Made by a program: the position numbers and the translations under genes. Source: Macrostomum lignano (lineage: Eukaryota). Taken from it: a stretch of DNA of 64,000 nucleotides. The DNA is taken from assembly GCA_002269645.1 (NCBI GenBank), contig NIVC01000028.1:310001-374000 (forward strand), in the 5' to 3' direction. Each line of letters begins with the position of its first letter. Position 1 is the stretch's first letter. The notes below the pieces were generated by a model. It searched no databases and was not told the origin of the DNA. It saw only the letters and a program-made list of their open reading frames with translations. This document shows, in pieces, positions 25,753 to 61,609 of this stretch.

Positions 25753-26723
25753 CTAAACTTTCCGAGCTCTTTCTGGATCGAAGCTAACAAGGCGTGAAAG
25801 CTGGTCGACTTTCTGCGGCACAACGTGAAACAGGCCGTCCTTTATCCGAACAGGGTTTTTCTGCAAGTGGCCGCTGACCTTGGTCATGATGGTAATTAGG
25901 TCGAGCTCACGAAAGTACTTCTCGATGAACTCGCAAGCAGTCTGCACGTACCGCGAACCCGAGTCGATGTTTCTAAAGGCGGCTGAGCCTTCAGTGGTGG
26001 CGTAGCAGAGCAGAAAGTCGCCCTCTGGAGGACGGATTGCGGAGTTGAACACCGGAGCGGGTGCCTCGTCCGTTTGCTCACGAGATTTGGCAGCATCAAC
26101 TCGGTCGCGACGGCTTCCGCGACAGGCCTGGATGAAGAACACCTTCGGCTTTCCTTCAAGGCTGCGGCAGACAGAACTCTGTGATGCGATGGTAGTGGCG
26201 GTGGAGTCTTCGGTCTTAGAAACTAAGTACAGTTCAGTCAAGACTTGTAAATGCGAGAAACATGTCAGTATCACCTTTTGGTACAACATTATACATTTCT
26301 ATTTAAGGGATTTTTATATCTCTCTTCTTGCTTGTACGAGCGAATCTATAGATAATTAGGCTCACCTTGAACTTTCCTGTCAGCTTTCGAACTTTGTAGG
26401 GAAAACCGTCCCTACCGTAGATGCAGTCGTGGCTGCCGTGCGCCATCAAGAAGCAGACAAAGCTGCCGTGCTTGGCAAGGTCCGGTAAGATTTTTATCTC
26501 ATTAAGAAAATTATCTACCTGCTCAACGGTGAGATCATTTTTTATCCTGACGATGAAGCGCAGACTCTCGAATACCCGCTTCACTCGGTCAACATCACGA
26601 TCCGAACCTTGACGCTCTTCAAAATTGAAGGTGATGTCACTTCCCCTGTCGTACTCGCTGATGTTGATGATCAGGCAGAAGCCTTGCGGATTCGTCACTG
26701 GATAGAAATCTTCCTCTTCGTGC
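25753..26723 (-). CDS. Caspase catalytic domain (p20 + p10) exons
   Basis: FYPVTNPQGFCLIIN, RQGSDRD, FLMAHG (catalytic His), GKPKVFFIQACRG (catalytic Cys), DFLLCYATTEG..AFRN..GSRYV. Confidence 0.96.
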
Positions 26724-29700
26724 CTGGAATGCAGAAGACGCTGAATATGGTTTCATACTTTAGAGCACACGAATAATTATGTATTAAGCACCTTGACGGT
26801 TGATGTCGAATTGCTTTGACAGAGATGGCTCCTTCGGGAGTTCTGAAAAGTTTTTATTTGATTCGACAGAAAAAAATATGCATTGCATTATCCAATCAGT
26901 GATAATTTCTGAGCACTTCCAACGTGATGCATAAATTTAACCTTGACTCACGGATCTGCTTCATCATCACTCGGTTCCTCGTCATAAGCATGGTCCGTGA
27001 CAACTCTTCGTCTGGAATGGTTAAAATGTGCTGTAGCTGTATGTGCTGTAGCTGTGTGTGCCGTAGCTGTGTGTGCCGTAGCTGTGTGCGCTGTAGCTGT
27101 GTGCTGAAGGAACTTTTAACAGAGTCAACTATTGCAATATTTGACGGACGATAACAATTACACGAGGTCTCAAAAGCCAAAATCAGTCGATTTATATATT
27201 TTAATATATATATACAGTATTAGGCATGCACAAAGAACGTGCGTACATTACAATCGATAAATTAAAAGGCAACTTGAGCGTGCCCCACCCCCCAGCGCAG
27301 GCCAACCCCAAAACCGATATTGTTACTCACAATATAAAGTCATCACATCCCTTCGCACTTAAGTATGAAAGTAGGATTAACAAAAAATAACATTATTAGT
27401 TATAATAAAAAATATTGAAGCGAGCAACACAACTAAGGTACTAAAATCTAGTTCATAAACAACAGTTACTTCAGCTGTAAGTCAGTCGCTCAGGTGCAGC
27501 GCACTTCCTCATCGAACGGCGAAGCTGCGGCATGGCGTCGGGCTCCACCGCAGCCTCAGCAGCAACGCCGTCAGGGAAAACTTCGGGTGCGTTCTTCGGC
27601 ACTGCATCGCACTGCGGCACCGCTGCCGCAAGTACCGCCGGCTTGGTCGGAAGCTGACTGACCGCGGCCGGCTTGCGCACCTGGTCCACGTGCCTGTGTG
27701 CGTCTCTGTCGTCATCGAACCGGCACGTGAAGTCGGCCGCACCAGAACTGTCCGTGACTGTCGCCGGCCTCCAGCGTCCGTCACTCGCGAAGTTTCGCGC
27801 CAGCACCGAGTCGCCGACATTAATGCGGCAGTCGTGCGCGTGGGCATCGTGCTGCTCCTTCTGCAGTGCCTGCTGTACGGCCACCCGAGCGGGCAGGTCA
27901 GGGCGGACTCGGTCGAGCAACGATTTCAGCCTCCGTCCCATCAGCAGCTCGCAGGGAGCCCTCCCGGTAGTCGCATGCGGCGTGACTCGGTACGTCAGGA
28001 GGAACCGGGAGACTCGCTCCTCCAGAGAGCCGCTTCGCTGCTTGGCCAGCGCGCGCTTCAGAGTCTGAACTGCTCGCTCTGCTTGGCCGTTGGACGCCGG
28101 GTGGTACGGAGCCGTGCGCACGTGCCGGATGCCGTTCTTGCTCAGGAATGTCTCCATCTCCGCGCTGACCAGGTTCGGACCGTTGTCGGAAACAATCACG
28201 ACCGTGAGTTGCAAAGCTCGATCGCAGCTTCTCGATTGTCGCAGTCGACGACGTCGAAGGCATCACATGCACGTCTATCCACTTGGAGTGGGCGTCAACG
28301 ACAACGAGCAACATCCGGCCCTGGACTGGCCCGGCGTAGTCAATGTGCAGGCGCAACCACGGCTTGTCCGGCCTAGCCCACGGCTGCAGTGGAAACGGAC
28401 CTGGTGACTTCTGCATCTCCTGGCATTCGGTGCACGCGGCGACCAGCCGCTCGATCGCCTCGTCCAGCTTAGGCCACCAGAAAACGCTTCGAGCCAGCGC
28501 CTTCATTCTCGTGGCGCCCTGGTGCCCCTGGTGCAGGCTGTGCAGCAGCGCCTCTCGACCGGCCTCGGTAACTACGACTCGGCAGCCCCAGAGCAGACAA
28601 CCGTCTTGGGTGCTTAGCTGGTCGGCTCGCGTGCAGTATGGCTGCAGCTCAGGCGGCGGCCGCTCTGGCCAGCAGCCGGTCTCAGTGAAGCGCAGAACTC
28701 GGGACAAGTCCGGGTCTGTCCGAGTCCACGTCCGGATGTGCCGAGCCGTCACCGGTCCCTCGTCCAGGAAGTCCATGAGTAGGACGACTTCAGCTGGAGT
28801 TGGCGCTTCCTTCGGCTTCTCCGGCAGCGGCAGCCGACTCAGCGCATCGGCTCGAAGCAGCGACTTGCCCGCTCGATGGACCATTGAGTACTGGTAGTCG
28901 GCCAGGAGCAGCGCCCACCGCTGGATTCTGCCAGAAGCCAGTGCTTGTATCGGTTTCGACTGGTGCAGCAGCCCGAGCAGCGGCTTGTGGTTGCTCACCA
29001 GCTCGAAGTCTCGCCCGAACAGGTACATGTGAAATTTCTTAACTCCGTAGATGACCGCGAGCGCCTCCTTCTCGAGTTGTGAGTATCGGGTCTCTGCTTC
29101 ATTTAGCGTGCGAGAGGCAAAGGCGATCGTTCTGTCGACTCCGTCGATCCGGTGGCTGATGACGGCACCGATGCCGTAAGGCGAGGCGTCGCACTCGAGC
29201 ACCAGCGGTTTCTGACGGTCGATATGCGCGAGCACCGGTGCCTGGCTGAGTAGCGACTTGCACCTGCGGAACGCCTCGTCCTGCACAGCGTCCCATCGCC
29301 AGGGGGCGCCCTTGTTCAGCAGCTGGTTCAGCGGCGCCAGTTTGGTTGACAGATTGGGCATGAACTTGCCGTAATAATTTACCAGCCCGAGGAAGCTGCG
29401 CAGCTGCGTCTGGTCGCGGGGTGGTGACGCATCCTGGATCGCCCGCACCTTGTCCTGGAGAGGGTGCAGCCCTTCGGCGTCGATTCGGCGGTGCCTGAAG
29501 CTGATGCTCTGCTGCATAAAACTGCACTTGCTCAGGCCGCACCGGAGGCCGCTCTGCTGCAGTCGCCGAAGGACCTGCTCTAGCGTCTTCAGGTGGCTGT
29601 CATCATCCACACCGGTAACCAGCAGGTCGTCAACAAAGCAGGTGACGTGGGGAATACCCTGCAGAAGGCAGTCCATCAGGCTCTGGAAAATGCCGACAGC

Positions 29701-32700
29701 GGGAGCAACTCCAAACGGCAGTCTCGTGTACCGCAGCAGCCCCTTGCTGGTATTGATGGTGCAGAGTTCTTGCGAGGCCTCGTCCAGAGGCAGCTTGCGA
29801 CAAGACAAGCTTGGTGAATTTCTTTCCGCCGGCCAGTTTTGCGAAGAGCTCCTCGATCCTCGGCACCGGGTACGTGTCAGGCTCTACGTCGAGGTTCACC
29901 GTTTGTTTAAAATCAGCGCATATGCGGACCGAGCCGTCTGTCTTTAAAACGGGTACGATCGGAGACGCGTAGTCCGAGCTGCTCACCGGCTTCAGCACTC
30001 CCTGTTCGATCTCTTTTCGAGTTGCGCCTCGACCTTCTCCTTTAGCGCAAGCGGGAAGTTTTTGGCCTTGAAGAACCTCGGCCGCGCTGAGGCTTTCAGC
30101 TGCAGCCGAACTGCGGGCCCCGTGTACCGACCGAGGCCCGGCTCGAAGACTTCGGCGTACTTGTCCAGCAGGCTCTTGAGCCCTGGTTGCCCTGACGGAT
30201 GCTGTTGCACCTCCTTGATGTTTCGCCAGTCCAGTGGAAGTTCGGCCAGCCAGTCGCGGCCAATCAGATTTGAGCCCGCACCGTCGGTCACGAGCAGCGG
30301 AAGCACCTTGATGGCGACCTCGGTCGGCGCGCGAACTCGAAGTTGGCCGAGTACGGGCACCAGCTCTCCGGAGTACGTCCGCAGCTGCATGTTGACTTGT
30401 TCGAGTCTGGGACGCCCGCGCAGTACTTCGTTGTAGGTCTTCGCAGAGATGAGTGACACAGACGCCCCAGTATCGACCTCCATGCAGACTGGCGTGCCGT
30501 CGATGTCGATGGTGGTCTTGATCGGCGGAATCTTGCCGCCTACGGCAGCCGCCATCACTTGCAGCGAGAAAGCCTCCTCCACTGCCTCCTCCGCCTGCAG
30601 CTCTTGGACGGTCGAGTCGACGCGACGATTCGAAGCTCGCTGCAGCCCCGCTGATCTCTCGTCCCGCTGAGCAGGCGGCGCTGCCTTGCACGCAGCAGCG
30701 ATGTGTCCGGTTTTCGAGCATGCGTAACACCTACTATTAATGAACGGGCACTTTGCAGCCAGGTGGCGCTGGGACCGGCATCCATAGCAACGCTTCGCTG
30801 GCGGCCCGCTGGCCGCCTCCCGCTGGGCAGAATGGTGAAGAGCGTGCACCGTGTCAGAGCCGGCGCCTTTAGCCACCAGCAGGTTGCCTTGAGCGGCCGA
30901 CTCGTGCGCCTGCGCCAGCGACAGCGCCGTATCCGGCGAGAACTCCTTCTCTGTGAAGAGCCTCCGCTGAATGGAATCATCACTGATCCCCAGGACCAGC
31001 CGGTCCCTGAGCATGCTGCTGAGCCCAACGCCGAAATTGAAGTCCCGAGCTAGCTTACACAGCTCAGCCAGGAACTCTGCCACCGACTCGCCTGCCTGAC
31101 GGCTTCTGCTGTAGAACCTGAATCGCCGTACAATCTCTGGTGGGGTTGGATCAAAATGCTCCTTCAGCTTAGCACAGATGGCGTCGTAGGTCGTGTCCTT
31201 CGGCAGAGCTGGTGACAGCAGGTTTGATATCAGCTGGTAGGTGTCCCTGCCACAAATGCTCAGCAGCACGGCTCGTCTCTTTTTATTGCTGATTTCATTT
31301 GCTGTGAAAAACTGTTCTAAGCGCTCCTGGTACTGCTGCCAGGTCTCAGTGCCCTCTTCAAAGGGTCCTATTGAGCCTATCAGACTCATTCCTCGTCGCC
31401 ACTTTAACAGAGTCAACTATTGCAATATTTGGCGGACGATAACAATTACACGAGGGCTCAAAATCCAAAATCAGTCGATTTATATATTTTAACAAGCTGT
31501 TAAAACCCGCAGATTTTGAACCCGGGGAACTCCATTCCCTGGAATTATTTTTGCATGTATTCTAAAATCTGAGGTCAAACTCAAACAAAACTTGTTAATA
31601 GTTAGGAAAGACTTAAACATAAAATAGAGTATTCGTGTAAAATTAAGATTTGAAGCCAGCATTGATATTGTCAGGCAAACTCTGGCCTCTACCTCTGTCT
31701 CTCCCTATGTCCCTTGGATCCTTTGAAACTTCTATCTTCTCTCCTTTTCTCTCCTTTCTCCTTTCTCCTCTTTTATCTCTTCTCATTTCTCTCTGCTCTC
31801 TACTCCCTCTTTCCTCTCCCCTTTTTTCACTCCTTACTCTACGCTCTCTCAACACTTCCCAGTTTCAATGCATGTCTGTCCACTCTCTTCTCATCTCTTC
31901 TATTGTCTCTTCCTTCACCTCTCTTCTCGTCTTTGCTCTCTTATCTCCCCTTTCTCTTCTTTTATCTTCTCTCTCTTATCTTTTCTCATTTCTCTATGCA
32001 CTCTCTCCTCTCATCTCTCTGCTCTCTCATCTCTCTGCTCTCTCATCTCTCTGCTCTCTCCTGTCCCATCTCCTTTCTCTCTAATCTCTCCCCTTTTTCT
32101 CACCTCCCTCCTTTTCACCAATTTCCCCTGTCCTCTCGATTCTCTCCCCTCCCCTCCTCTCTCCTCACTCACTTCTCATCTCTCCCTTGTTTCCACCTCT
32201 TATCTCTTATTTCTTATTTCTCCTTTCTCTCTACTCTCCCATCTCTTGTCTGTTCAGTGTTCACTCTCGTTTCTGCTATCTCATCTCCCTTCTCTAATCT
32301 TTCATCTTTACTCTCATATGTTCTCTCACCTCTCTCCTATTGTACTCTTCTCTTTTCCCTTTTCTGACTCAGGACTCTCTTTCCTTTCTTCTTTCTTCTC
32401 GTCTCTTCTCTTCCATCTTCTATACTCTCTCCCTCTCTTGTTTTCTCTCTTCTCTCTACACTCTCCTCTCCTCTCATATATTGTCTGTTTACTCTCATCT
32501 TTGCTCACTCATTCCCCTCTCTCTTCTGTCATCTCTACTCCCCTTCTCTCCTCTTTTCCTCTCTCCTTGTACTCTTCTCTTTTTCCTCTTCTGACTCTAC
32601 TCTTTTCTACTCCTCTCTTCTCTTCCCTCTTGTCCCCTCTATTCTCTTCTCTCGTCTCTCTGCACTGCAAGTTTCAACGCTGAGTTGCCACTATTCAAGG

Positions 32701-32724
32701 AGGAGATGTCGAAATGACAGACAC

Positions 32725-32759
<35 letters not shown>

Positions 32760-35700
32760 ACACGTCAACTTTAGTATATACAGAGACGAGTGGAACTCCT
32801 CCTTCGGAGAAAGGGGAACAACTCCCATCACCGGAATTCCATTCCCTGAAATATCCATCAACTGAAATTCCCTGTATTGAACCCTATCTTCCAAATCGTC
32901 TCTAAATTCTTTACAAAACCTTTCAAAGACCATAGCTCAAAGACTCTCACGTCTCTCATATCTCATATCTCCTCTTCTCTTCGCTATTATCGTGACTCTC
33001 TTCTCTGTCCTCTCTCTCATCTTATCTCTACCCCTACTCCCTTATTTATCTCTTCTCCCTCGTCTTTCGTCTGTAACCTCTCCTGTCACTTGTCTCCTCT
33101 CTTCTCTCATATCTCTCCTCTTCACCTCTGTCTCCTGTCTCCTCTCTTCTCTCTTATCTCTCCCTCTTCTCTCCTCTCTCAAATCTCATCTCTACTAACT
33201 TATCTATCGTCTCTCCTAACCCTCTGTCTCTTCTCTTTTCTCTCCTATCTGATCTCATATCTCATATGCGCTCTCACACTCTACTTTCTTATCTCCCATT
33301 TTTCTTCCCTCCCTTCCACTATCCCCTGTCTCTTCTCTTCTCTCTTCTCTATCCTCTCCATCCTTTCTTCTCTCCTCTCCTTTCTCCTTTCATCTTCTCC
33401 CCTCTCTTCTCTAATCTCTAATCTCTTCTCTCCTATGTTCTCACTTATCTCTTTTCTCATCGCATCTCTCCTCTCTCCTCTCCTCACTACTTTCCTCTCT
33501 TAACTCTCTCTTCTCCTCTCGCTTCTCTCTCCTCTCTCTTCTCTCATCTCTACTACCTTGTTTATATCTTCTCCCGGGTCTTTCGTCTCTACTCTCTCCT
33601 GTCTCTTTTCTCCTCTCTTCTCTCTTCCCTCATCTCTCATCCCTCATCCCCTCATCTTACTCTTTCTTTCTCCTCTACTCTCCCCTCTCTTCTCCCCTCT
33701 GTACGCTCTTATCCCTCATCTTTTCTCTCTTTTATCATCTCTTTTGTCTCCCTGTGTTATCTCATATCTCCCCTCTCATCTCCTCTCTCATCTTCTCTTC
33801 TCTCTCCCTCTTTGTTCCCGCCTTACTTCCCTCTTCTCTCCCCCTTGTCATGTCTAATTTCTCCACTCATTTCTACTCTGTTTTCTATCATCTCATCTCT
33901 CTTCTCTTTTCATTATTTTCTTTACTCTCTTCTCTGACTGATTGAAGATGCCAAATCCATCAAGATCCTCTCCGCGAAGCAGAAATCCTGTCGGTGCAAC
34001 TGAAAACCATCGAAATCCTCTCCGTGAAACTGGACTGAGACTAACAAAACTAGACTCAACAAAACTGGACTCAATCGAAATTTTCTCCGTCAAAAAGAAT
34101 AAATTATCAGGATTCATTGGTTAGGGCTATTGTTAGGGTTAGGGTTCGAGCTACACACAGCTGCGTGTCCAAATAAAAATTGAACCAATTGAATCAATTG
34201 ATTGCGCAACCGATTTCTCAGTCAGTCAGTATCCGTCTCAGTTAAAGTTAACAAAAAGATTGCGCAATCTAAATCAACCCTCCAGTACACAGAGGCCGAC
34301 CCCTTTTCAATACGCAGTGGCAGTTAGAAATTGAATCCCCAACTGTTGGGGGGGGTCGGTCGAACGCCCATTGAACCAAAAAATGAGTACAATCTTTGCA
34401 GAAAGCTAAAAGTATGAAATAGTTTTTGTGATGCTGTGCTTTTAGTTTTTATATTTAAAACAAACAATTTATATCCTCGAACTCAGCGTTGCAAGATCTT
34501 TTCAGCAGTATAAGTCTCTTCTCTGGAAGTTTAAAACTCGAAGAGCAGTTAGCGTTTGAAACTGTCTGATTTATAGCATTGAAGTATCGAGTGTACGTTC
34601 ACTGCCTGCTTGCAAGTTGATGCATTGAATTTCAATGTCCAAAAAATACACATGGCTGCCCATTGAGAGGCAGGAAAACTCCTGCTGAATTATCTATACA
34701 GTCAGCCAGTGAGCCAGGGTCCAAGTGTACACACGCAGCCATGAGAACGCTCCCACCCCCCACTGGAGAGAAATACACTACAGAGATAAGAAAAAGTGGT
34801 GGCGCAATCACTAAAAATTGATGCATTTTCAGCTCCGAGCAGAAAAAAGGGACAAATAAGACTATCAAAATTATTAAAATAGCCTATAGCCGACCTCGGA
34901 TAATTTCCAATCTTCCCATTTAAGTTTCAACGCTGAGTTGCCACTATTCAAGGAGGAGTTGTCGAAATGACACACAGACAGACAAACAGACAGACTTAAG
35001 TGTACCCCAACCCACAGAACTCACGGCAGTGCCAGAGGCTCGTCGAAGTAAATCTTTCCGTCGTACCTAAATAGGCAGTGCGGAGTCTGAAGTCAGGGGG
35101 TATTCCATTGAGAGACCATGCTCTATGCTTAATTTCTTCCTTTTGTTTAAATTAACTTCAAAACAATTTTTTTAAATTTGTTTTAAAATTTGTTTTAAAA
35201 TTTGTTTTAAATTCTTTGTTTTGTTGTAAAAATCTGTAATATTACCAAAAAAGCACAAAAAATTTAAATGTTAAACTTAAACTCAACTATCACAGCAAAC
35301 TGCTTGCTGGTGTCTCACAGCTCGCAGGCAGCTGAACATTAATATTCAACTGGCAATCTGCAGTCAAACTGCACTGCAAACTCCCTCAATGCAGCTCAGT
35401 CAGTGTCTGCTGCCCGTTTAAACTACAAAAATGTAAAAATGCCCACTCAGAGCAACTGCAGTCAGCTGCTCAATATTAAATCATAAATTACAGCATAATG
35501 TTTATCAATGATAAATCAAAGTCAGAGAGACATTCTCAGTCGCCATGGAAACTCACCCACGCAGCAGCTCAGCCAATTCGCTCTTTTCCTTCTGTGTGGC
35601 CAAATCCAGCGCAGTCCTGCCGTATTTGTTCTTCAGGCTCCAATCCGCCCCTGAGTCCAGCAGAACCCGACCGAATGCGGCGGCGGTGGCGGAGGGCGTA

Positions 35701-38700
35701 TTGATGGCTGCCAGCATGAGGGGCGTGAATTCACACTGACCCGTGGCATTGGCGGAGGCTCCGGCAGCCAGCAGAGCGGAGGCTGCGGCAGAATTGCCAG
35801 TCCTGGCTGCATGGTGCAGGCAACTTTCAGCCAATATAGTCGCACAGGTGGGGTCACCTAGCTGCACCAGCTGCTCCCACTGAGCCTCATCACCACACGA
35901 GCTGTTCTCAGCTGCCCACATCAACGCGGTGCGACCCCGAATGTCAGGCAGGTCGCAGTTGCCGCGGGTCGCCGCTCGCCGCAGCCCCGCCAAGTCGCCC
36001 GCCTCGGCCAGCCGCTCCAGTTTCTGTCGAACCGCCTCCTCCTGCAAAGGCGAGCGGGAAATTTGAGCACAGCTGCTCAGCTGCAGCCGCATCGGCACTG
36101 CAGATGCCGCTCACCTGGTCTGTCAGGCCGGAGATCTTGTCACCTTTGCTCACAACCAGCCGCATCTCCCTGAAACAACAAAAATGAGCAGCGAATTTGC
36201 AATTTTCTCAAATCCGACAACTAAGATCGCAAAAAAATTAATTCCAAGATGTATGAATTAATTTTCATGATAAATTCAGTAGACAGAAATGTTTTGTTTG
36301 AAGAACGCCAAGTCAATGAATTATGGTAGTTTGAAATTAAGCTATATTTTAGCGGCAGCGCGCTCCTAGGGTCTTGTGCTCCTAAATGAAAAGATTCAAA
36401 GCTTAGGAAACAAAGGAGAGTACCGTATCGCGTCGCATAAACCATAGACTATTTTCGAAGTAAAAGTCTATACTTTGCAGTAGTCATAGCAATACGCAAC
36501 ACCCCCACCGATGCTTATACAGTGCAGTTCAAAGTTACGCCTTAAGCAATTCAGTAATAAGTCAATCGTTCCGGAGGTCGCCTGACTCGTGTGCTCCTAC
36601 GGAACTCGAGCACACCGTGTTCCTTGTGCCTAGGCGACTGCATTGCATGGCGCATTGGACTTGTGGTAGCACTGTCTTGGCACGTAGTTGCATCAGTATC
36701 ACGAGGGGTGATCCCAGACTGCTTCGAATCATCAATCGGTAGTTCCTCTGTACGAGCAGTAGCATCGGACTGGTGCACTAGTCGTCCTTCTGCGTCTCGG
36801 AAAGTATTTGTACCAACTGTAGACTTCAGCTCAGAGGGGACCCGTTGCTCCTTGTGCTCCACACGCACGAAAACAGGAACTGGCTCTTGAACCGGCCTCG
36901 TCCTCTCTGTACAAATGGCTGATAGACGTGTTCGGGGCGACTGCTGAAACACCAGAAGTGCCGGAATTGATCCATTGCAGTGAGGAGTCGTATTCTGAAA
37001 CAGGCAGAATCCTGCTCAATGCCTTTCCAGCTCAGAAAGATTGGCACCAGCGTTTAACTTTCTTAAATAAAACTTCAGTTCTTCAATGACTCTCTCCACC
37101 TGACCGTTGGATTGATGATGTCCTCGGGGAGTAAGTGTGTGGTCGATGTAGTTCTCTCGCAGGAAAGTAACGAAATCTTCTGCCACAAAAGTTCCACCAT
37201 TGTCCGAAACCAGATTTTTCGGCAATCCGGTATACTTGAACGTTTTTCTCAGCGCACTGATGACAATGGATGCTTTCATTGACGGCACGGACTGTACATC
37301 TACCCATTTTGAAAATGCGTCAACCAGGACAAGGAAGCGTTGACTTTTGAAAGTAGCGATGTCAACGTGAACTCTCTCGAAGAAACTTTTTGTCTCCGGC
37401 CATGACGACAGATTTGCATTGCTTCTTTTCCTAGCATGTAGCTGGCATTGAACACAACGTTGAACGAATGCATTGATTTGAGCATCTATGTCGGGCCACC
37501 AGAAGTACTGTCTGGATAGACGTAGCATCCTCACGATGCCGGGGTGGTCCTCGTGAAGCATCTGAAGAATTTCGCTTCTCAGGCTAGAGGGTGGGACGAT
37601 GCGCAATCCTTTGAAAATCAATCCGTTTTGGAGTGTGTATTCCAACTTATTGCGTGAATATGGCAGCATAGCTGGTGGTGGATAAGCAGGCCAGCCGTCT
37701 TGAATGTACTTCTTGAGCATGTCCAACTTGTAATCTTTAGTTCGCACGATCCTCTGCAGTAGCTGTTCGGGGTTTCCGAAACCCTCCAGTGCATTGATTT
37801 CTATGAGGTTGATCTTCTGATCCGCTGAGTCCGACTGCAATGGAAGTCTAGACAAAGTGTCTGCAGCGTACATCGTTTCACCCTTGACGTACTTCACATT
37901 GTAATCGTAAGCTCTTAACAGTAATGCCCATCGCTGAATCCTTGCTGAAACTCGCTCGGAGACCTTGTTCGGATTAAATATGTACTGAAGCGGTCGGTGA
38001 TCAGAAATGATGGTAAATTTTCGACCCGCGAGGTACTGATAAAAGTATCTGGTCCCTTCGACGATCGCTAACGCCTCCCGCTCAATGTTAGCGTAGTTGC
38101 TCTCCGCTGGAGTCAGGACTCGGCTGCCTAGCCAGACAACCTGTCGTTGCATTGGATCATGAGCTAGAACGTACCCGAGGCCATCCTTAGAGGCGTCACA
38201 AATCAAGTACAACGGTTTCGTAATGTCGTATGCGGTTATCACACCGCCTGCAATAATGCTCTTCAGCTTGTCGAATGCCGCAGACTGCTCTCCATGCCAA
38301 CTCCAGTGAACTCCTTTCTTCAGCAGCTGATATAACGGTCGTGCAATCATTGAAAAGTTTTTGCAGAAGACGCCATAGTGTCGGAAGGTGCACAGAGCGC
38401 TACGCAGTTGGTCTTTGTCTTTTGGATATGGTAACCTCTTCCACGCCTCCATTCGTGCTGGGTCGGGGTGCATGCCTCCATCGCGCAAAATGAAGCCAAG
38501 AAATCGAACTTCTCTACGACATTCTTGAGACTTTCTCTGGTTAATCTTGAACCCGCAGTTTGCCAAACGATCCTTGACTTGACGAACCAGCTGCATGTGT
38601 TTTTCGACTGAATCCTCAGGAGTCCCAATACCAGGGGGGTAATGATGTCATTCTGATATGAGGCTGTAAATGGTTTTTTATTATAGGCAGGGGGGTTGTG

Positions 38701-41700
38701 TGCACCCTGGCGCACTTTAAGCGACATAGGCACACAACCGGCGAGAGGCATTACTGCCCATTCCGCCGACTCCCCTGAGCTGGCATACAAGCGCGCGGAT
38801 ACGTACGCAGGCACACACTCACACAGGAGTGTACAGCGGCCCTAACTTTATATACATACTTAACAGGGGCGGTAAATGGTACATCCCGAAGAACTTCGTC
38901 CATGATTTCCTGAAATATTAGAGGCGCCACGGAAATCCCGAATTGTAGATATCTGAATGCAAAGAATCCCATGTGAGTAGAAATGCATGTGAGCTCTTGG
39001 CTCTCAGGGGATAGAGCCACCTGTAAGAAGGCCTGTTCTAAGTCTAGGACCGTATAGAATTTAGCGTTGGGAATCTTAGCCAGGATCTCCTCCATCTTCG
39101 GAAACCTGTACTTGTCCACGTCAATAAGACGATTGAGCGTCATAGAGTAGTCGCCACACAGTCGAATAGGTCTTACTGATCCCTCGGGCTTGACCATTGG
39201 GACTATTGGCGCTGCAACAGTAGGATTCTTGACTGAATAGATGATTCCTGAAGCAAGAAGTCTTCTTAGTTCGGTTTCTACCATAGACTTCATGGAGAAA
39301 GGAAGTGAGCGAGCAGGAAATCGCATGCCTTCCATACTCACACCCGAACGTAAGCGAAAGCTGGCAATGAAGTTTGAGTTTTGATCTCGGACGACTGGTA
39401 GGCACTTGTGTTCATTCGACACTCGAACCGCTTGATCCATTCGCACTAGGTCTAGGGACGGTATGAAGTTCATGCCCAGAATAGCTGTTGTATCTTGACC
39501 GACGTAGATGTTTTCTGAAGCAGACTTGCCACCAATAACCTGTAGCTTTGCCCCGTAGATGACAGAAGTGACCGTAGCTTGAAAACCTCCGTAAGATCTT
39601 AGTTTTTGGCTGACTGGCTGTAACTCTAAGCCTGAGCTCTTATCGATTTGATCCGGAACCACGGTTACTTGGCTGCCGGTGTCCACAAGCATGTTGACTT
39701 CGGTTTTTCCTAGACGACACCGAACAAACCACTGATCTGAGTAACCCGTTTTTGGCTGTCTAACCGCATGAATGAGTTCCAGATGGTAAGAGCTAGTGTT
39801 CCCTGGTGAAGGGCTGCAGCTTGGCATTCGTTGGATTGCGTTCATAGCCTTTGATCTGCACACGGTAGCTAGATGTTCTACCTTGCCGCATTTAGGGCAC
39901 TTGGCTTCTCGGAACCTGCATGCTGATCGTAGATGTCCCGATTTCCCACAGGTGTGACACTTAGCTGTTTTACCTTTAGGTTTGCCGCTCGACTGATTAT
40001 GCAGATGTCCCTGAGGTTGCTTGAATGAGACAGAGCGTTGAGCACTGCAGCTTCTTGGTCTCGAGAATGTCCCAGCATTCTGCACATTAGCGATAGTTTC
40101 CGGCTTGTCTGTAGCAGTTGCAATTGACTCGGTCATGAGTCCCTCTTGAATAGCATCATTAAGCTCAAGCGTGCCTTTGGATAGCAGTTTTTGCCGCAGA
40201 TTCTGACTACGAAGTCCGAAGATAAACTGAGACAGGATCAGGTCTTCGCGCAATTCACCATATTGGCACTTGTTCGCCTGTTGCTTGAGCCGTGCAACGA
40301 AATTTGTAATGCTCTCCGCGTCCTTTTGAACAGTAGAATGGAACACATGTCGCTCATAGTGAAGCAGAACTTTCGGTTTGAAGTGCTCGAGCAAAGTGTC
40401 CTGAATCGACTTGAACGTAACACCGGCCTTGGTGATGTCTTCTGGTTTTATCAGCTCCTCCACCAGATTGAATGCAGATTCACCGCAGGTAGCCAGTAGG
40501 ACTGCTTTAGCTTGCTCATTCTTCTCAGTTGCCTCCAGGTAGAACAGAAGTCGTTTGAAGTATTGTTCTATCTCTGGGTAAGAAAGTGGCATCTCACCAA
40601 GACGGTACTCCATTGACTGAGCCATTTTGAGGGCAGCAGGTGCGGAATTTTCCTCGACCCTCAGTTGCTTTTTATTCTCGTCGCCATGTTTTGTTTGAAT
40701 AACGCCAAGTCAATGAATTATGGTAGTTTGAAATTAAGCTATATTTTAGCGGCAGCGCGCTCCTAGGGTCTTGTGCTCCTAAATGAAAAGATTCGAAGCT
40801 TAGCAAACAAAGGAGAGTACCGTATCGCGTCGCATAAACCATAGACTATTTTCGAAGTAAAAGTCTATACTTTGCAGTAGTCATAGCAATACGCAACAAA
40901 AAATTCCTAATTATCTGAGCTGCTCGCAGATGGACTTTCTGTTGTGTTGCTACTCTATGCGTGTGCGTAATTGTGTGTACGTTCGATGTACATCTCTTAG
41001 CTATCGATCGCATTACAATGTATGATATATAAGTGAGAGCGCGGTGAGTTTGGGAGCTTGAGAGTTTCGCCTACAAACTTGCAGACTGGCTGGCTTATTC
41101 ATTATACAACAGTTTCCAAGAGGCCTGCAGCAGCTCTGCAACAATCAGCATTGGCGAGAGCGCATCCGACTTCTCACACGCAGCTAATTTTCCATTTTTG
41201 CAGCATGATTTTCCTTTCATCTCACAATGTCTCACAAAGCACTCACGCACAGCCTCCCAGTTCTCCATCTACACCTCAACCCACACACTCTCACTACATA
41301 CGAGGCCCTGCAGCTTCCATTCTCGACTGACATCAACCGGCACCCCATTGGCTGTTAGGCAGCCAGCCAATCACAGCTCTCGCCCATCAAGCAGTCAGCC
41401 AGAGACAAGCTCAGCTGACTGGCTCTGATTGGCTGGCCTGAGACTGCAGCTCTGGTCACCCCAGCCGAATGCTGCAAAACTTGATGGACACAGCAGCGAA
41501 CTGCTCACTCACCGCTCGATGTAGCTGGCCAGCTCTGAGTGGCCGCTGAGCCTCGCCAGGTCCGACGCCGTCCGACCCTCGCGATCCTTCAGTCCGAGCA
41601 GCTCCGACCTCTTCGAGTTTCCGTGCTTGAAGCATTCATTGAACCTGGGCTCTCTGAGCAGGTGCAGCAGGTGCTTGGCGCATTTCCAGCTTCCAGTCCG

Positions 41701-42140
41701 CGCCGCCTCCATCAGCGGAGTGGCGCCGTTTTCGTTCCGCAGCCACTTTGCATCGAACGACAGCAGCGTCAGCAGCCGCAGGTGGTCCCGTCGGGCTGCC
41801 AGGTGCGCAGCCGTGTCGCCGTTCGCGTCAGCCGCCTTGGGGTTCGCGCCCAGCTCAAGTAAGTACAAGATGCATTTTTCAGTGTGCACGGGAGTCTCAG
41901 GAGCGTCGGCCGCCAGCATGAGGACGGTCCGACGAGCTGCATCAGCGCTGGAGAGCAGCTGGCGCGTTGCCAGCCGCCGCACCTGGCCGAAGTCACCTCG
42001 GATGAGATAGTGGGTGAGAGTCTGGAAATTTAAACATGTGAGTGAATTCCTGCAACTGCAACTGCAACAGAAATAATTTAATCAGAAATAAATTAAAGTT
42101 TTATTACCTTATCCTCTAACTTAGAGGCTTCATTACCCAT
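25753..42140 (-). CDS. Ankyrin-repeat caspase (ANK-caspase), 8 exons, ~667 aa
   Basis: Exons 42108-42140, 41513-42021, 36115-36169, 35557-36041, 35025-35066, 26952-27011, 26366-26723, 25753-26214. All GT-AG, phases 0/2/0/2/2/2/0 join without a stop (2004 nt). The last acceptor is the least certain. N-terminal ANK repeats, C-terminal caspase. Confidence 0.8.
27030..27105. repeat. 13/15-bp minisatellite (GTAGCTGTGTGCT)n, short copy in the pre-caspase intron
   Basis: Same unit as 48523-48915 and 58817-59185; followed by GAAGGAACT exactly as at 59187-59195. Confidence 0.95.
27471..31389 (-). pseudogene. Gypsy gag-pol (two CCHC knuckles, protease, RT, RNase H, integrase) with frameshifts
   Basis: MSLIGSIGPF..WQQYQERL, CYGC..H..C, CYAC..GH..C, VDTGAS, ICADFK, FVDDLL, CDASPYGIGAV, HQGH..C..C, HIDYAGP, SDNG, SNGQAER. 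Spread over several frames. Confidence 0.93.
31700..33935. repeat. Two ~1-kb cryptically simple pyrimidine-rich (CT) tracts (31700-32660, 32940-33935)
   Basis: Almost purine-free + strand with no fixed period. Confidence 0.95.
32669..32760. repeat. Dispersed repeat head + (GACA)n, second copy at 34921-34996
   Basis: AAGTTTCAACGCTGAGTTGCCACTATTCAAGGAGGAG.TGTCGAAATGACA followed by CAGA repeats at both loci. Confidence 0.85.
36290..40898 (-). mobile_element. Ty3/Gypsy (Mag-like) LTR retrotransposon, full length, recent, in intron 2 of the ANK-caspase gene
   Basis: 212-bp TG..CA LTRs at 36290-36501 and 40687-40898 (3 mismatches). PBS TGGCGACGAG, PPT GGTGGGGG. gag-pro-RT ORF 38751-40625, RNase H-integrase ORF 37016-38596. 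Flanks AGAAA/AAAAA. Confidence 0.95.
38674..38867 (-). mobile_element. 194-bp insertion splitting the Gypsy RT just before the YxDD box
   Basis: Flanked by GGCTGTAAATGG (38662-38673) and GGCGGTAAATGG (38868-38879). A-rich 3' end on the minus strand. Removal joins VPFTA to SYQNDII. Confidence 0.7.
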
Positions 42141-43394: not shown

Positions 43395-44210
43395 TTTACC
43401 CATTGGTCTGTGTCCGGTACTATCCATTGGTCTGTGTCCGGTACTATCCATTGGTCTGTGTGCGGTACTATCCATGGTCTGTGTCCGGTACTAACCATTG
43501 GTCTGTGTCCGGTACTATCCATGGTCTGTGTCCGGTACTATCCATTGGTCTGTGTCCGGTACTATCCATTGGTCTGTATCCGGTACTATCCATGGTCTGT
43601 GTCCGGTACTATCCATTGGTCTGTGTCCGGTACTATGCATTGGTCTGTGTCCGGTACTATCCATTGGTCTGTGTCCGGTACTATGCATTGGTCTGTGTCC
43701 GGTACTATCCATTGGTCTGTGTCCGGTACTATCCATGGTCTGTGTCCGGTACTATCCATTGGTCTGTGTCCGGTACTATGCATTGGTCTGTGTCCGGTAC
43801 TATGCATTGGTCTGTGTCCGGTACTATCCATTGGTCTGTGTCCGGTACTATGCATTGGTCTGTGTCCGGTACTATCCATTGGTCTGTGTCCGGTACTATC
43901 CATGGTCTGTGTCCGGTACTATCCATTGGTCTGTGTCCGGTACTATCCATTGGTCTGTGTCCGGTACTAACCATTGGTCTGTGTCCAGTACTAACCATTG
44001 GTCTGTGTCCGGTACTATCCAATGGTCTGTGTCCGGTACTATCCATTGGTCTGTATCCGGTACTATCCATGGTCTGTGTCCGGTACTATCCATTGGTCTG
44101 TGTCCGGTACTATCCATTGGTCTATGTCCGGTACTATCCATTGGTCTGTGTCCGGTACTATCCATTGGTCTATGTCCGGTACTATCCATTGGTCTGTATC
44201 CGGTACTATC
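43395..44210. repeat. 23/24-bp minisatellite (CCATTGGTCTGTGTCCGGTACTAT), ~34 copies
   Basis: Direct reading. Confidence 0.98.
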
Positions 44211-47505: not shown

Positions 47506-50500
47506 TCATTTCCGTGCACCAAAAAACGAGCTCAGGAATCGCGGTTTCAGCTTCCCACCCGCCAGGTACTCGTGCCCCATCAGCTCCAGTGCGGATCTTC
47601 TCTTCCTGCGGTCCTTGGCGGTGCAGCGGCTGTAGAAATCCCTCAGCTCTGCGGACCGGCCGTCCGGCAGGGCGGGGGCGCCCCTCCTGTCGATCAGCTG
47701 GGCCATTTCTAGCAGGCTTTTGGTGTTCGCGAACGGCCTTGAGCCGGACGCCATCTGGAAGACGGAGCAGCCGAACGCCCAGATGTCCGACTCTCTGCTG
47801 TACTGCACGCTGTCCGACTCTCCCGCTCCGAGCAGCTCTGGCGCCATGAAGTTCAGAGTGCCCTTTGGTTTCGAAGTGGAGGCTGAGATGTGGCTGACTG
47901 AATGCTCCAGCTTAATTGACAGGCCGAAGTCGATCAGCTTGATTCGCGTCTTGTCAGCACAAACAATTATGTTGGAGCAGTTGATGTCTCTGTGGATGAC
48001 GGGCGGCTGCTGGCTGTGCAGGTAGAGCAGCGCGCGGCAGATCTGCGAGCGGTCGGTCAGTGAGCAGTCATCATTCATGGGAACATGGAGCAGGAGCATC
48101 AAGGATGCACAATGCTCACCTGCTCGCTGAAGTCTCGGGTCGTCAGCTCGTCCAGCGGCTTGTTGTCGATAAACCTCTCCAAGCTTCGGCCGTCCAGCAG
48201 CTCCATGAACACAACGACTGTGGCGGGCTTCGGCTGAGCGATGTGCAAGAACCTGACGATGTTGGGATGCCGCAGTCGGCACAGGTTTCTCTCGCTCTCG
48301 ACAGCTCTGTGGATCTCTGAGCTTACATCGGTTTGGTCATCACCGAGCTGCACAGGCAGTCTGAGAGTCTTGGCAGCGCACGTGACGCCCGTGTCAGTTC
48401 GAACTTCGTGGACTTCGCCGAAGCCTCCGCGGCCGATGAGACGAACGGCGTCCCAGCGCTCCAGGAATGGGGGGCCTTCGGGTCTGAGGGGATGCGAATT
48501 GAGGCAATGAGGGATAATATGCATGCTGTAGCTGTGTGCTGTAGCTGTGTGCTGTAGCTGTGTGCTGTAGCTGTGTGCTGTAGCTGTGTGCTGTAGCTGT
48601 GTGCTGTAGCTGTGTGTGCTGTAGCTGTGTGTGCTGTAGCTGTGTGCTGTAGCTGTGTGTGCTGTAGTTGTGTGCTGTAGCTGTGTGCTGTAGCTGTGTG
48701 TGCTGTAGTTGTGTGCTGTAGCTGCGTGCTGTAGCTGTGTGTGTTGTAGCTGTGTGCTGTAGCTGTGTGTACAGTAGCTGTGTGTGCTGTAGCTGTGTTT
48801 GCTGTAGCTGTGTGTGCAGTAGCTGTGTGTGCTGTAGCTGTGTGTGCTGTAGCTGTGTGTGCTATAGCTGTGTGCTGTAGCTGCGTGCTTTTCTGTGTGT
48901 GGTGTAGCTGTCTGTACTGAATGAACTCACGGCAGTGCGAGAGGCTCGTCGAAATAAATTTTCCTGTCGTACCTGAAAAAGCAGTGCGGAGTCTGATTTC
49001 TGGCGGAATTCTGGTGAGAGCCCATCATGTTCTGTGCTAACTTACATTCTAACATTCTATTCTACCTAATTATTTTGCTTTATTTATATTTGTTACAAAA
49101 TAGATTTTTAAACATTTTCTGCAATTTAATATGGTTAAATTGAACTTAAATGTCACAGCAAAATGGTTGCTGGTGTCTCACAGCTCGCAGGCAGCTGAGC
49201 ATTAATATTCAACTGGCAATCTGCAGTCAACTGCACTGCAAACTCCTTCACTGCAGCTCAGTCAGTCCCTGCTGCCGATTTAAACTACAAAAATGTAAAA
49301 ATGCTCACTCAGAGCAACTACAGTCAGCTGCTCAATATTCAATCATAAATTACAGCATAATGTTTATCAATGATAAATCAAAGTCAGAGAGACATTCTCA
49401 GTCGCCATGGAAACTCACCCACGCAGCAGCTCAGCCAGTTCGCTTATTCTGTACTCTGTGGCCAAATCCAGCGCAGTCCTGCCGTCTTCGTCCTTCAGGC
49501 TCCAATCCGCCTCTGAGTCCAGCAGAACCCGACCGACTGCGGCGGCGGTGGCAGGGGGCGCAAAGGCTGCCAGGATGAGGGGCGTTGATTTAAAGTCATT
49601 CCTCGCATTGGCGGAGGCTCCGGAAGCCAGCAGAGCGGAGGCTGCGGCAGAATTGCCAGCGGTGGCTGCATGGTGCAGGCAACAAAAAGCCCATCTATTC
49701 GCACAGGTGGGGTCACCCAGCTGCAGCAGCTGCACCCACAGAGCCTCATCACTGCACGAGCTGTTCTGAGCTGCCCGCATCAACGCGGTGCGACCCCAGT
49801 CGTCAGGCAGGTCGCAGCTGCCGCGGGTCGCCGCTCGCCGCAGCCCCGCCAAGTCGCCCGCCTCGGCCAGCCGCTGCAGTTCCTGTCGATCCGCCTCCTC
49901 CTGCAAAGGCGAGCGGGAAATTTGAGCACAGCTGCTCAGCTGCAGCCGCATCGGCACCGCAGATGCCTCTCACCTGGGCTGTCAGGCCGGAGATCCTGCC
50001 ATCCACAACCAGCCGCATCTCACTGCAACAGTAAAAATGAGCAGCGAATTTGCAATTCTCCTAAATCCAATACCTACAATCGCAAAAATAATTATTTCAT
50101 GATAAGTTTTGTAAACAGAAATTCTAATTCTAATTCTAATTCTAATCTGAGCTGCTCGCAGATGGAGTTTCCGAGAGGACTGCAGCAGCTCTGCAACAAT
50201 CAGCATTGGCGAGAGCGCATCCGACTTCTCACATGCAGCTCATTTTCCATTTCTGCAGCATGAGTTTCCTTCCATCTCACAATGTCTCACAAAGCACTCA
50301 CGCACAGCCTCCCAGTTCTCCATCTGCAGCTCCACCACACACTCTCACTGCACACCGAGGCCCTTCAGCTTCCATTCTCGACTGAGATCAACCGGCACCC
50401 CATTGGCTGTGAGGCAGCCAGCCAATCACAGCTCTCGCCCATCAAGCAGTCAGCCAGAGACAAGCTCAGCTGACTGGCTCTGATTGGCTGGCCTGAGACT

Positions 50501-51348
50501 GCAGCTCTGGTCACCCCAGCCGAATGCTGCAAAACTTGATGGACACAGCAGCGAACTGCTCACTCACCGCTCGATGTAGTTGGCCAGCTCTGAGTGGCCG
50601 CTGAGCCTCGCCAGGTCCGACGCCGTCCGACCCTCGCGATCCTTCAGTCCGAGCAGGTGCGACCTCTTTGAGCTTCCGTGCTCCTCGCACTCATTGAACC
50701 TTCCCTGCCTGAGCAGGTGCAGCAGGTGCTTGGCGCATTTCCAGCTTCCAGTCCGCGCCGCCTCCATCAGCGGAGTGGCGCCGTTGTCGTTCCGCAGCCA
50801 CTTCGCATCGAACGACAGCAGCGTCAGCAGCCGCAAGTGGTCCCGTCGGGCTGCCAGGTGCGCAGCCGTGTCGCCGTTCGCGTCAGCCGCCTTGGGGTTC
50901 GCACCCAGCTCAAATAAGTACAAGATGCACTTTTCAGTGTGCACGGGAGTCTCAGGAGCGTCGGCCACCTGCATGAGGACGGTCCGACGAGCTGCATCAG
51001 CGCTGGTGACCAGCTGGCGCGTTGCCAGCCGCCGCACCTCGCCGAATTCACCTCGGATGACGTCGTGGGCGAGAGTCTGGAGATCGGCTGGTGAGTCTCC
51101 GACGCTTGGCCGGTTGCTGGGGTCCGGCTGAGTGAGTTCCTGCAACTGCAATTGAGGCACCCAAGCTGCCCATTCAAACATGTGAGTGAGTCCCTGCAAC
51201 TGCAATTGAGGCACCCAAGCTGCACATTCAAACATGTGAGTGAGTCCATGCAACTGCAATTGAGCCTATAAATATTCTGTCTCAGTTTTCTCACTTTAAC
51301 TTTACTTACTATTTCGTCAATAGATGGTGATCTCCGTCGCTCTGCCAT
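47506..51348 (-). CDS. Ankyrin-repeat Ser/Thr kinase (MAP3K/STE11-like domain), copy A, 7 exons, ~673 aa
   Basis: Exons 51310-51348, 50568-51076, 49974-50022, 49419-49900, 48931-48972, 48120-48483, 47506-48042; phases join (2022 nt). Kinase motifs GRGGFGEV, AAK, HPNIVRF, HRDINCSN, DFG, GTLNFMAPE, SDIWAFG. An extra 3' exon cannot be excluded. Confidence 0.87.
48523..48915. repeat. (GTAGCTGTGTGCT)n 13/15-bp minisatellite in the pre-kinase intron
   Basis: Direct reading. Confidence 0.98.
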
Positions 51349-52628: not shown

Positions 52629-52658
52629 TATTTTATTTAAAATTTTCTTTTTAAAAAA

Positions 52659-60800: not shown

Positions 60801-61609
60801 GACACAGCAGCGAACTGCTCACTCACCGCTCGATGTAGCTGGCCAGCTCTGAGTGGCCGCTGAGCCTCGCCAGGTCCGACGCCGTCCGACCCTCGCGATC
60901 CTTTAGTCTGAGCAGCCGCGACCTCTTCGAGTTTTCGTGCTTCCCGTACGCATTTAATCTCCACTTTCTTAGCAGGTGCAGCAGGTGCTTGGCGCATTTC
61001 CAGCTTCCAGTCCGCGCCGCCTCCATCAGCGGAGTGGCGCCGTTTTCGTTCCGCAGCCACTTCGCATCGAACGACAGCAGCGTCAGCAGCCGCAGGTGGT
61101 CCCGTCGGGCTGCCAGGTGCGCAGCCGTGTCGCCGTTCGCGTCAGCGGCCTTGGGGTTCGCACCCAGCTCAAATAAGTACAAGATGCACTTTTCAGTTTG
61201 CACGGGAGTCTCAGGAGCGTCGGCCACCTGCATGAGGACGGTCCGACGAGCTGCATCAGCGCTAGTGACCAGCTGGCGCGTTGCCAGCCGCCGCACCTGG
61301 TCGAAGTCACCTCGGATGACGTCGTGGGCGAGAGTCTGGAGATCGGCTGGTAAGTCTCTGACGCTTGCCCGGTTGCTGGGGTCCGGCTGAGTGAGTTCCT
61401 GCAACTGCAATTGAGGCAACCAAGCTGTACATTCAGACATGTGAGTGAGTTCCTGCAACTGCAATTGAGGCAACCAAGCTGTACATTCAGACATGTGAGT
61501 GAGTTCCTGCAACTGCAATTGAGCCTATAAATATTCTATGTCTCAGTTTTCTAACTTCAACTTTACTTACTATTTCGTCAATAGATGGTGATCTCCGTCG
61601 CTCTGCCAT
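57810..61609 (-). CDS. Ankyrin-repeat Ser/Thr kinase (MAP3K/STE11-like domain), copy B, 7 exons, ~673 aa
   Basis: Exons 61571-61609, 60827-61335, 60232-60286, 59674-60158, 59199-59240, 58424-58778, 57810-58346; phases join (2022 nt). Same kinase motifs as copy A. Confidence 0.87.
58817..59185. repeat. (GTAGCTGTGTGCT)n 13/15-bp minisatellite in the pre-kinase intron
   Basis: Direct reading. Confidence 0.98.

Follow-up and report, generated by a model that had tools for sequence, protein, structure and literature searches.

A probable ankyrin-prodomain caspase gene of a Macrostomum-specific tandem family in the flatworm Macrostomum lignano

Caspases carrying ankyrin-repeat (ANK) prodomains were described in 2024 in Genome Biol Evol as the platyhelminth "ANK caspases", a platyhelminth-specific clade first noted in Schistosoma (PMC11463336). 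They were reported as confined to parasitic flatworms and a link to parasitism was proposed, while the sole Macrostomum lignano case mentioned was a kinase-prodomain caspase, placed sister to the ANK caspases (PMC11463336). An annelid ANK-caspase case, from Alitta virens, is cited in the same work (PMC11463336). Here we analysed a stretch of 64,000 nucleotides from the free-living flatworm M. lignano (assembly GCA_002269645.1, contig NIVC01000028.1, positions 310,001 to 374,000 of the forward strand), which is called the window below and in which a minus-strand gene, named gene C, joins an ANK prodomain to a caspase domain. It is reasonably probable that gene C is a protein-coding member of a Macrostomum-specific tandem family, in which a two-block ANK module is spliced at a phase-2 intron to interchangeable effectors, and for which we propose a mechanism of activation by clustering. 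A preliminary description of the locus had cautioned that ANK-caspase fusions may exist in other invertebrates, and this caution was justified by the published platyhelminth class (PMC11463336), the annelid case and a lobster protein (P0283).

Exon model and caspase domain of gene C

Gene C runs on the minus strand from an ATG at 42140 to a stop codon at 25753, with GT-AG at all junctions and no internal stop, so the multi-exon frame is open over its whole length with canonical splice sites throughout, as had been described. The minimal canonical model contains 7 exons (1926 nt, 641 aa) in an uninterrupted frame. We ran tblastn with annotated M. lignano paralogs, and it turned out that two small exons, both with good splice sites, lie beyond the minimal model. 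The fullest model, in which these two are backed by paralog homology, thus contains 9 exons, 2019 nt and 672 aa. The earlier figure of 8 exons and 2004 nt could not be reproduced, as none of the 8 linker-exon combinations gives 2004 nt and homology supports the 9 exons and 2019 nt. That earlier model joined DEADP to HEEED without exon 7, and the database model P0121 does the same. The exons of the fullest model are as follows.

42108..42140, minus strand: exon 1, 33 nt, encoding MGNEASKLEDK, with a GTAATA donor
41513..42021, minus strand: exon 2, 509 nt, ANK block 1 (five repeats), with a non-ancestral acceptor at 42022
36115..36169, minus strand: exon 3, 55 nt, encoding (R)EMRLVVSKGDKISGLTDQ, which joins the ANK blocks; counterpart in the P0001 gene at L001 11276-11332
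35557..36041, minus strand: exon 4, 485 nt, ANK block 2 (five repeats), ending in phase 2 after ...AELLRG
35025..35066, minus strand: exon 5, 42 nt, phase 2-2, linker cassette 1, YDGKIYFDEPLALP; 79% identity by tblastn of P0001 and P0009
26952..27011, minus strand: exon 6, 60 nt, phase 2-2, acidic linker cassette 2, RRVVTDHAYDEEPSDDEADP
26792..26842, minus strand: exon 7, 51 nt, phase 2-2, linker cassette 3, TPEGAISVKAIRHQPSR; homology-backed, matching NFSGAMRAKIVRHQPPR of P0001
26366..26723, minus strand: exon 8, 358 nt, HEEEDFYPVTNPQGF... and the p20 part with ERQGS (Arg449) and MAHG (His507)
25753..26178, minus strand: exon 9, 426 nt, with QACRG (Cys550), RVD, QTD, the p10 part with AFRN (Arg600) and the stop

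The three linker exons of 42, 60 and 51 nt can be skipped without loss of frame, because all of them start and end in phase 2. All 8 inclusion patterns (8 of 8) are open, with lengths from 1866 nt (621 aa) to 2019 nt (672 aa), and the database models of paralogs also vary in which of the three exons are kept. The counterpart of exon 5 in the P0001 gene lies at L001 14236-14277, where P0001 reads YEGKVYFNEPLALP. A chance or transposon-derived origin of the reading frame was ruled out, as all large exons are 57-100% identical to annotated M. lignano proteins.

Pfam recognized the caspase domain as Peptidase_C14 at residues 395-606 of the 641-aa model, with E=1e-41 and a score of 143.6 bits (threshold 21.4), and the best match among solved structures is caspase-3 (E=5e-37), followed by caspase-8 and caspase-7. 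The catalytic residues His507 (MAHG) and Cys550 (QACRG) align to H121 (in SHG) and C163 (in QACRG) of caspase-3, and the P1-Asp pocket is complete, with Arg449 (ERQGS), Gln548 and Arg600 (AFRN) aligned to R64, Q161 and R207. The preliminary description had named this His and Cys, and had attributed the Arg residues of RQGS and AFRN to the pocket; both statements agree with the alignment. It had also placed RVD and QTD in the p20-p10 linker. Both motifs (RVD, 557-559; QTD, 566-568) do follow QACRG, but only QTD lies inside the predicted disordered loop 563-582, while RVD stands just before it. The C-terminal tail carries the motif VSFDPERA, which is specific to the Macrostomum caspase clade.

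Structure prediction of the full protein, which had been suggested as a check, returned a confident caspase fold. In the AlphaFold2 model, built on a 44-sequence alignment, the mean predicted local distance difference test (pLDDT) score is 86.4, with values above 90 over most of the caspase domain and mostly above 90 in the ANK blocks; the two disordered segments are 374-413 (the acidic linker) and 563-582 (the intersubunit loop). A Foldseek search with this predicted fold gave target-normalised template modelling (TM) scores of 0.87-0.90 to caspase-3, -7 and -8. By profile, catalytic dyad, P1 pocket and predicted fold, gene C can be assigned to the caspases (peptidase family C14A), and Asp-directed activity is predicted for its product.

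To describe selection on this domain, we calculated the ratio of non-synonymous to synonymous substitution rates (dN/dS) against the P0001 gene. The ratio is 0.41 for exon 8 (p20; p=0.003) and 0.49 for exon 9 (p10; p=0.005), both significantly below 1, and the caspase exons of gene C are under purifying selection. We also defined conserved caspase columns by an agreement of at least 9 of 10 among ten members of the Macrostomum clade. At the 69 columns obtained, gene C has no private change, compared with 2-7 in the other paralogs. P0001 (L001 10001-15978) reads QAGRG for QACRG, in which the catalytic Cys is replaced by Gly while the remaining caspase domain is conserved, and it is a candidate pseudo-caspase.

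The ANK module, its tandem relatives and the 5' end

The prodomain was matched by Pfam to ANK families only (Ank_2, E=9e-26), and no death-fold prodomain of the caspase recruitment domain (CARD) or death effector domain (DED) type was found by Pfam. Residues 12-361 form two five-repeat ANK blocks, each encoded by one exon of about 500 nt, with a 55-nt exon between them. With about 360 residues of ANK and a disordered linker of about 50 residues the prodomain is long, which is a trait of initiator caspases. The linker contains the acidic stretch DEEPSDDEADP / HEEED, so that the acidic linker between ANK and p20 reported earlier is indeed present, within a region (374-413) predicted to be disordered.

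The two blocks have diverged to a different extent. Among 19 close paralogs, the mean column entropy is 0.33 in ANK block 1, which is near-invariant, and 0.76 in the variable block 2. The hot spots of block 2 fall on repeat positions 2, 3, 5, 13 and 14, which are the beta-turn residues before G-x-T and the surface of the first helix. These positions make up the target-binding face of ANK repeats and are the ones randomised in designed ankyrin repeat proteins. For block 2, dN/dS is 1.08 between gene C and gene A, 1.80 between gene C and gene B, and 1.94 between genes A and B. This pattern of diversification is suggestive of a recognition surface.

Genes A and B stand immediately upstream of gene C and form a minus-strand tandem array with it.

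47509..51145, minus strand: gene B, ANK-kinase paralog, with ANK blocks 89% and 75% identical to gene C at the amino acid level
57813..61404, minus strand: gene A, second ANK-kinase paralog, with the same ANK module and a kinase

In both of them the ANK module is joined at ...AELLRG to a STE-like Ser/Thr kinase with intact HRD, DFG and APE motifs, whose closest solved relatives are MAP3K5/ASK1, MAP2K5 and PAK1. Gene C and the P0001 gene share one exon layout, with two ANK exons of about 500 nt, a 55-nt exon between them and a phase-2 end after AELLRG. Genes A and B likewise carry the two ANK-block exons with the boundary at AELLRG, and the P0004 gene has the 55-nt exon. The YDGK mini-exon (the exon 5 type) has left a relic in gene A at 59239-59198, and a weak tblastn match at 48971-48888 marks a possible one in gene B. 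We also ran tblastn with P0005 and P0001, which found no kinase relic in the long introns of gene C and no caspase exons downstream of genes A and B. Genes A and B agree at 97-98% of the amino acids of their kinase exons (dS 0.01-0.04) but at only 77% in ANK block 2 (dN 0.16, dS 0.08), a pattern consistent with a duplication or conversion in the very recent past and with fast change restricted to a single exon.

In the tree of ANK modules, a crown clade with 100% support mixes caspase-bearing, kinase-bearing and ANK-only genes, and the deeper branches are mostly caspase-bearing. This topology suggests an early origin of the caspase fusion within the family and an exchange of effectors at the phase-2 intron.

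The 5' end of gene C is altered. In the alignment with genes A and B, the start of exon 2 lacks 89 nt through a deletion, among them the ancestral acceptor (TTGCAG|TTGCAGGAACTC, which is in use in the annotated P0004 gene) and about 20 codons, LQELTQPDPSNR..SPADL. The segment LQELTQPDPSNR..SPADLQTLA before ANK block 1, typical of the Macrostomum ANK-module family, is thereby lost from gene C and ...TLTHYL is left. Three TTGCAG sites lie 46-58 nt downstream of the exon-1 donor, and splicing to any of them leads through LQEFTHMFKFPDSHPLSHPR to a stop about 20 codons on. The frame is kept only from the fourth AG after exon 1 (TTTCCAG|ACT, 42022/42021). A productive product depends on acceptor choice, because the ancestral-type TTGCAG sites lead to a stop, and expression of this copy would hinge on use of the non-ancestral exon-2 acceptor. 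The gene had been called intact, which holds for the open frame and the complete catalytic apparatus but not for the 5' end, where the deletion leaves the frame to be kept only through the acceptor at 42022. This deletion, the two extra linker exons and the two upstream ANK-kinase paralogs were absent from the preliminary description.

Exon 1 together with about 36 nt of its 5' flank is homologous to exon 1 (MGSAASSLNNT) of the annotated P0004 gene (L002). The start codon is followed by the N-myristoylation-type motif G-N-E-A-S-K, and MGNEASK fits the N-myristoylation consensus. A start of the form MG[SN]xxS is shared with P0004, P0003 and P0024, which are all caspase-bearing, and with none of the kinase-bearing paralogs, which start with MA(E/Q)R....

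For the product of gene C, we searched a protein collection at full length, in which a prefiltered candidate set was scored. Among the matches listed, the best ones are all from M. lignano, and the best full-length relative is P0001 (67% identity, 98% query coverage). Its gene, in the same assembly (GCA_002269645.1), has the exon order, intron positions and phases of gene C within 6 kb. The caspase part of gene C is matched at 100% identity by the UniProt model P0121 (302 aa), which begins inside intron sequence. P0002 (1038 aa) is a merged model, made of gene C exons 3-4, 6, 8 and 9 and pieces of both retrotransposons described below, and therefore the same or a near-identical transposon-bearing locus is probably present in another assembly. 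The differences between P0002 and the window are mostly junction artefacts; the piece of TE2 is identical and that of TE1 about 90% identical.

Intronic retrotransposons, repeats and other features of the window

Two retrotransposons within the 16-kb gene had been noticed before, and both turned out to be degenerate Ty3/gypsy elements with long terminal repeats (LTRs).

36289..40898, minus strand (gene sense): TE2, Ty3/gypsy-type LTR element in intron 2; LTRs of 213 nt (40898-40686 and 36501-36289), 98.6% identical
27115..31492, minus strand (gene sense): TE1, Ty3/gypsy-type LTR element in intron 5; alignable LTRs of about 90 nt (31492-31403 and 27204-27115), 96.7% identical

They share a TGGCGACGAG-type primer-binding site, and Pfam found gag, protease (PR), reverse transcriptase (RT), RNase H and integrase (INT) in both, in Ty3/gypsy order. 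In TE2 the RT is split over two frames and a stop lies inside the integrase region. In TE1, gag-PR, RT-RNaseH-INT and the INT end are in three frames, with the RT split between frames. No clear pair of target-site duplications was made out for either element. The 3' LTR of TE1 ends 104 nt upstream of exon 6. We regard the elements as later intronic insertions, which stretched a gene of roughly 6 kb to 16.4 kb.

Several repeats were observed in and around gene C. Beside TE1 in intron 5 lies a CT-rich low-complexity tract of 2.3 kb (31650-33900; GC skew -0.71 and AT skew -0.51 on the plus strand), which yields long Ser/Leu-rich and Glu/Arg-rich pseudo-ORFs (open reading frames). Between the 3' LTR of TE1 and the exon-6 acceptor there is a short CACACAGCTACGG-like array (27030-27095, minus strand), which P0121 reads as AHTATAHTATAH.... 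A 24-nt minisatellite (GGTACTATCCATTGGTCTGTGTCC) occupies 43369-44228, 1.2 kb upstream of the gene C start, with 36 copies and 93% matches, and gives long spurious ORFs in several frames. Further arrays were found at 23890-24267 (33-nt unit) and from 44776 (18-nt unit).

The rest of the window holds other coding traces. Between genes A and B, a phospholipase-A2-like ORF (PF08398, E=1e-12) is overlapped antisense by an ORF with the rve integrase core (E=2e-8), the pair lying at 52128-52871 (minus strand) and 52659-53468 (plus strand). Domains of the PF08398 type occur N-terminally in the capsid proteins of parvoviruses, and the pair may be what is left of an endogenous virus or a transposon. 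A kinesin motor domain (PF00225, E=4e-32) is represented by its C-terminal portion in the ORF at 17762-18811 (plus strand), which lies downstream of gene C, runs opposite to it and is presumably one exon of a kinesin gene. A mariner/Mos1-type transposase (HTH_48/HTH_32, partial DDE) extends over two minus-strand ORFs, 8091-9299 and 6873-8048, beside an ORF with weak RT and TNP-like matches, and adds to the transposon debris of the window.

Alternative explanations and comparison with known systems

A phylogeny of the caspase domain had also been proposed as a check, and it provisionally placed gene C outside the published ANK-caspase clade. We built a neighbour-joining tree from 236 columns with 200 bootstraps, in which deeper nodes received less than 50%. 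In this tree the M. lignano protein P0241 groups with the ANK caspases of Schistosoma, Trichobilharzia and Taenia (84% bootstrap), and gene C is placed apart from them, in a clade of Macrostomum sequences only (84%), together with P0041 and the Ras/Roc-caspase P0199. The kinase-prodomain M. lignano caspase discussed in PMC11463336 falls into the gene C clade of this tree as well. By BLASTP, the prodomain of gene C shows no more than generic repeat similarity to that of P0241 (at most 32.7 bits). No neodermatan ANK caspase was found as a full-length match of gene C among the 120 matches listed, and a caspase-domain-only search with a word-index prefilter retrieved no flatworm ANK caspase outside Macrostomum; such proteins were found only by an exhaustive HMMER scan and then via P0241. 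The two flatworm ANK-caspase types thus appear to be independent, provisionally so because the deep nodes of the tree are unresolved. Besides, P0199 and P0316, two M. lignano proteins encoded outside the window, combine a Ras/Roc GTPase with a caspase of the gene C clade (43% identity in the caspase part), a type that the 2024 survey does not report for M. lignano (PMC11463336).

If gene C is a working member of its family, its product would be N-myristoylated at MGNEAS and held on a membrane, with the conserved ANK block 1 as a scaffold and the variable block 2 binding a ligand or partner. Such binding would cluster the proteins and bring the caspase domains together, by analogy with long-prodomain initiator caspases, and the active enzyme would then be stabilised by a cut in the intersubunit linker, at the Asp of QTD568 or perhaps of RVD559. 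That ANK-driven clustering may activate the protease, as the preliminary description had proposed, is plausible, with indirect support from the hypervariability of ANK block 2 at the target-binding positions. Several points weigh against this reading. After the 5' deletion, splicing to any of three better-placed AGs would end in a premature stop, and sense-oriented intronic LTR elements often disturb transcripts. A full-length gene C product was not found in the protein collection among the matches listed, which include only the fragmentary or merged P0121 and P0002. The dead Cys of P0001 means that catalysis is not needed in every family member. In ANK block 2, dN/dS above 1 is not significant in a single pair (p=0.08) and could reflect relaxed constraint, while the putative myristoylation and clustering are read from motifs.

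A part of these points would equally be expected if gene C were a decaying, unexpressed or non-productive paralog, that is an incipient pseudogene, whose frame is open only because the damage is recent. We consider this unlikely, though the most probable of the alternatives. It would account for the loss of the ancestral acceptor and about 20 codons by the 89-nt deletion, with ancestral-type acceptors reading LQEFTHMFKFPDSHPLSHPR-stop, for the two sense-oriented LTR elements and the 2.3-kb CT-rich expansion in the introns, and for the lack of a matching full-length database protein among the matches listed; decay is also seen in its kin, as P0031 reads through a frame-shifted 5' region and P0001 carries QAGRG. 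However, no stop or frameshift occurs in 2019 nt over 9 exons and the splice sites are all canonical, and at the 69 conserved caspase columns gene C is the copy without private changes. Exon 1 is still in frame via the TTTCCAG acceptor, a type used twice elsewhere in the gene, and the exons remain undamaged although the LTR pairs have diverged by 1.4% and 3.3%.

The other two explanations find little room. Gene C might be the M. lignano orthologue, and so an ordinary member, of the published platyhelminth ANK-caspase clade known from Schistosoma, Taenia and others, given its ANK-then-caspase architecture, its flatworm host and the placement of a kinase-prodomain caspase from its own clade as sister to the ANK caspases (PMC11463336). 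This is very improbable, since it is P0241 and not gene C that groups with the Schistosoma, Trichobilharzia and Taenia sequences, the ANK modules of the two share generic repeat similarity only (32 bits), and repeat number and N-terminus differ. It is similarly hard to credit that the fusion is a gene-model artefact, made of two genes 8 kb apart, one ANK-only with the YDGK mini-exon at its end and one caspase-only. The ANK-only model P0009 does end in ...YDGKNYFDEPQAMP, caspase-only models (P0121 and P0122) exist, and the intron between the two parts measures 8 kb. But P0121 and P0122 have no start Met and read in from intron sequence, and several NCBI Mlig_3_7 (BOX15) models, namely P0001, P0003 and P0032, each cover the two domains and have the same exon phases, P0001 doing so within 6 kb; the junction phases in the window are all compatible.

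A coding gene of a Macrostomum-specific family therefore remains our preferred explanation for gene C. As a much more speculative extension, which we rate as doubtful, gene C and its neighbours would belong to a Macrostomum-specific repertoire of innate-immune or cell-death receptors, unlike NOD-like receptor (NLR) and death-fold systems, in which a membrane-anchored ANK sensor with a fast-diversifying block 2 recognises varied, possibly pathogen- or stress-derived ligands and is connected through exon shuffling to a caspase (for cell death or proteolysis), an STE-like kinase (for signalling) and perhaps a Ras/Roc-caspase (P0199) as outputs. The ANK module appears as a portable sensor-like unit, found on a caspase or a kinase in adjacent genes, and provides a concrete and datable case of effector swapping at a conserved phase-2 intron. 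Divergence of ANK block 2 at binding-surface positions between duplicates with near-identical kinases is the signature expected of a recognition surface. Caspase prodomains that are not death folds are one of the few handles on rewired cell-death and immune signalling outside model animals, and M. lignano is amenable to transgenics and RNA interference. The doubtful 5' end tempers the interest of the gene C copy itself.

Within its own family, gene C resembles the ANK-kinase paralogs (P0005, P0007, P0012 and others, and genes A and B), with ANK blocks 75-90% identical and exons alike up to ...AELLRG, whereas their effector is a STE-like Ser/Thr kinase and their exon 1 reads MA(E/Q)R... instead of MG.... 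The ANK-kinase-caspase P0041 shares the ANK-module family and the Macrostomum-specific caspase clade, but it has a kinase between ANK and caspase and lacks the QACRG Cys motif, while gene C has no kinase and keeps the dyad. Compared with caspase-3, -7 and -8 (PDB 5jft, 2j32, 4ps1, 1f1j), the caspase domain is 30-36% identical and keeps the equivalents of R64, H121, Q161, C163 and R207, with AHG and AFRN in place of SHG and SWRN; its ANK prodomain and linker of 412 residues contrast with the short prodomain of caspase-3 and -7 and the tandem DEDs of caspase-8. In Homarus americanus "ankyrin-3-like" P0283 and in the Alitta virens case, ANK is also N-terminal to Peptidase_C14. P0283, however, groups with a tick caspase-2-like sequence and reads FCRG for QACRG, so the lobster and annelid fusions look convergent and from an unrelated caspase lineage.

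In conclusion, the published ANK caspases (P0330 of S. mansoni, P0338 of Taenia solium and P0241 of M. lignano) resemble gene C in their flatworm host, ANK prodomain, long low-complexity linker and p20/p10 with QACRG. They differ in their caspase clade, and the ANK module of gene C is common to kinase genes; its two blocks hold ten repeats in all, whereas the module of P0241 has about four to five and shows no specific kinship to it, and gene C starts with the myristoylation-type MGNEAS, which P0241, P0330 and P0338 do not. The free-living M. lignano has both P0241, an orthologue of the parasite clade, and the gene C family, which contradicts the restriction to parasites and the proposed link to parasitism (PMC11463336). 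The ANK-caspase class is already known, and gene C is a variant of it with a rearranged 5' end rather than a new kind of protein. What is new is a second ANK-caspase lineage in a free-living flatworm, with its kinship to adjacent ANK-kinase genes, its hypervariable ANK block 2 and its myristoylation-type start.

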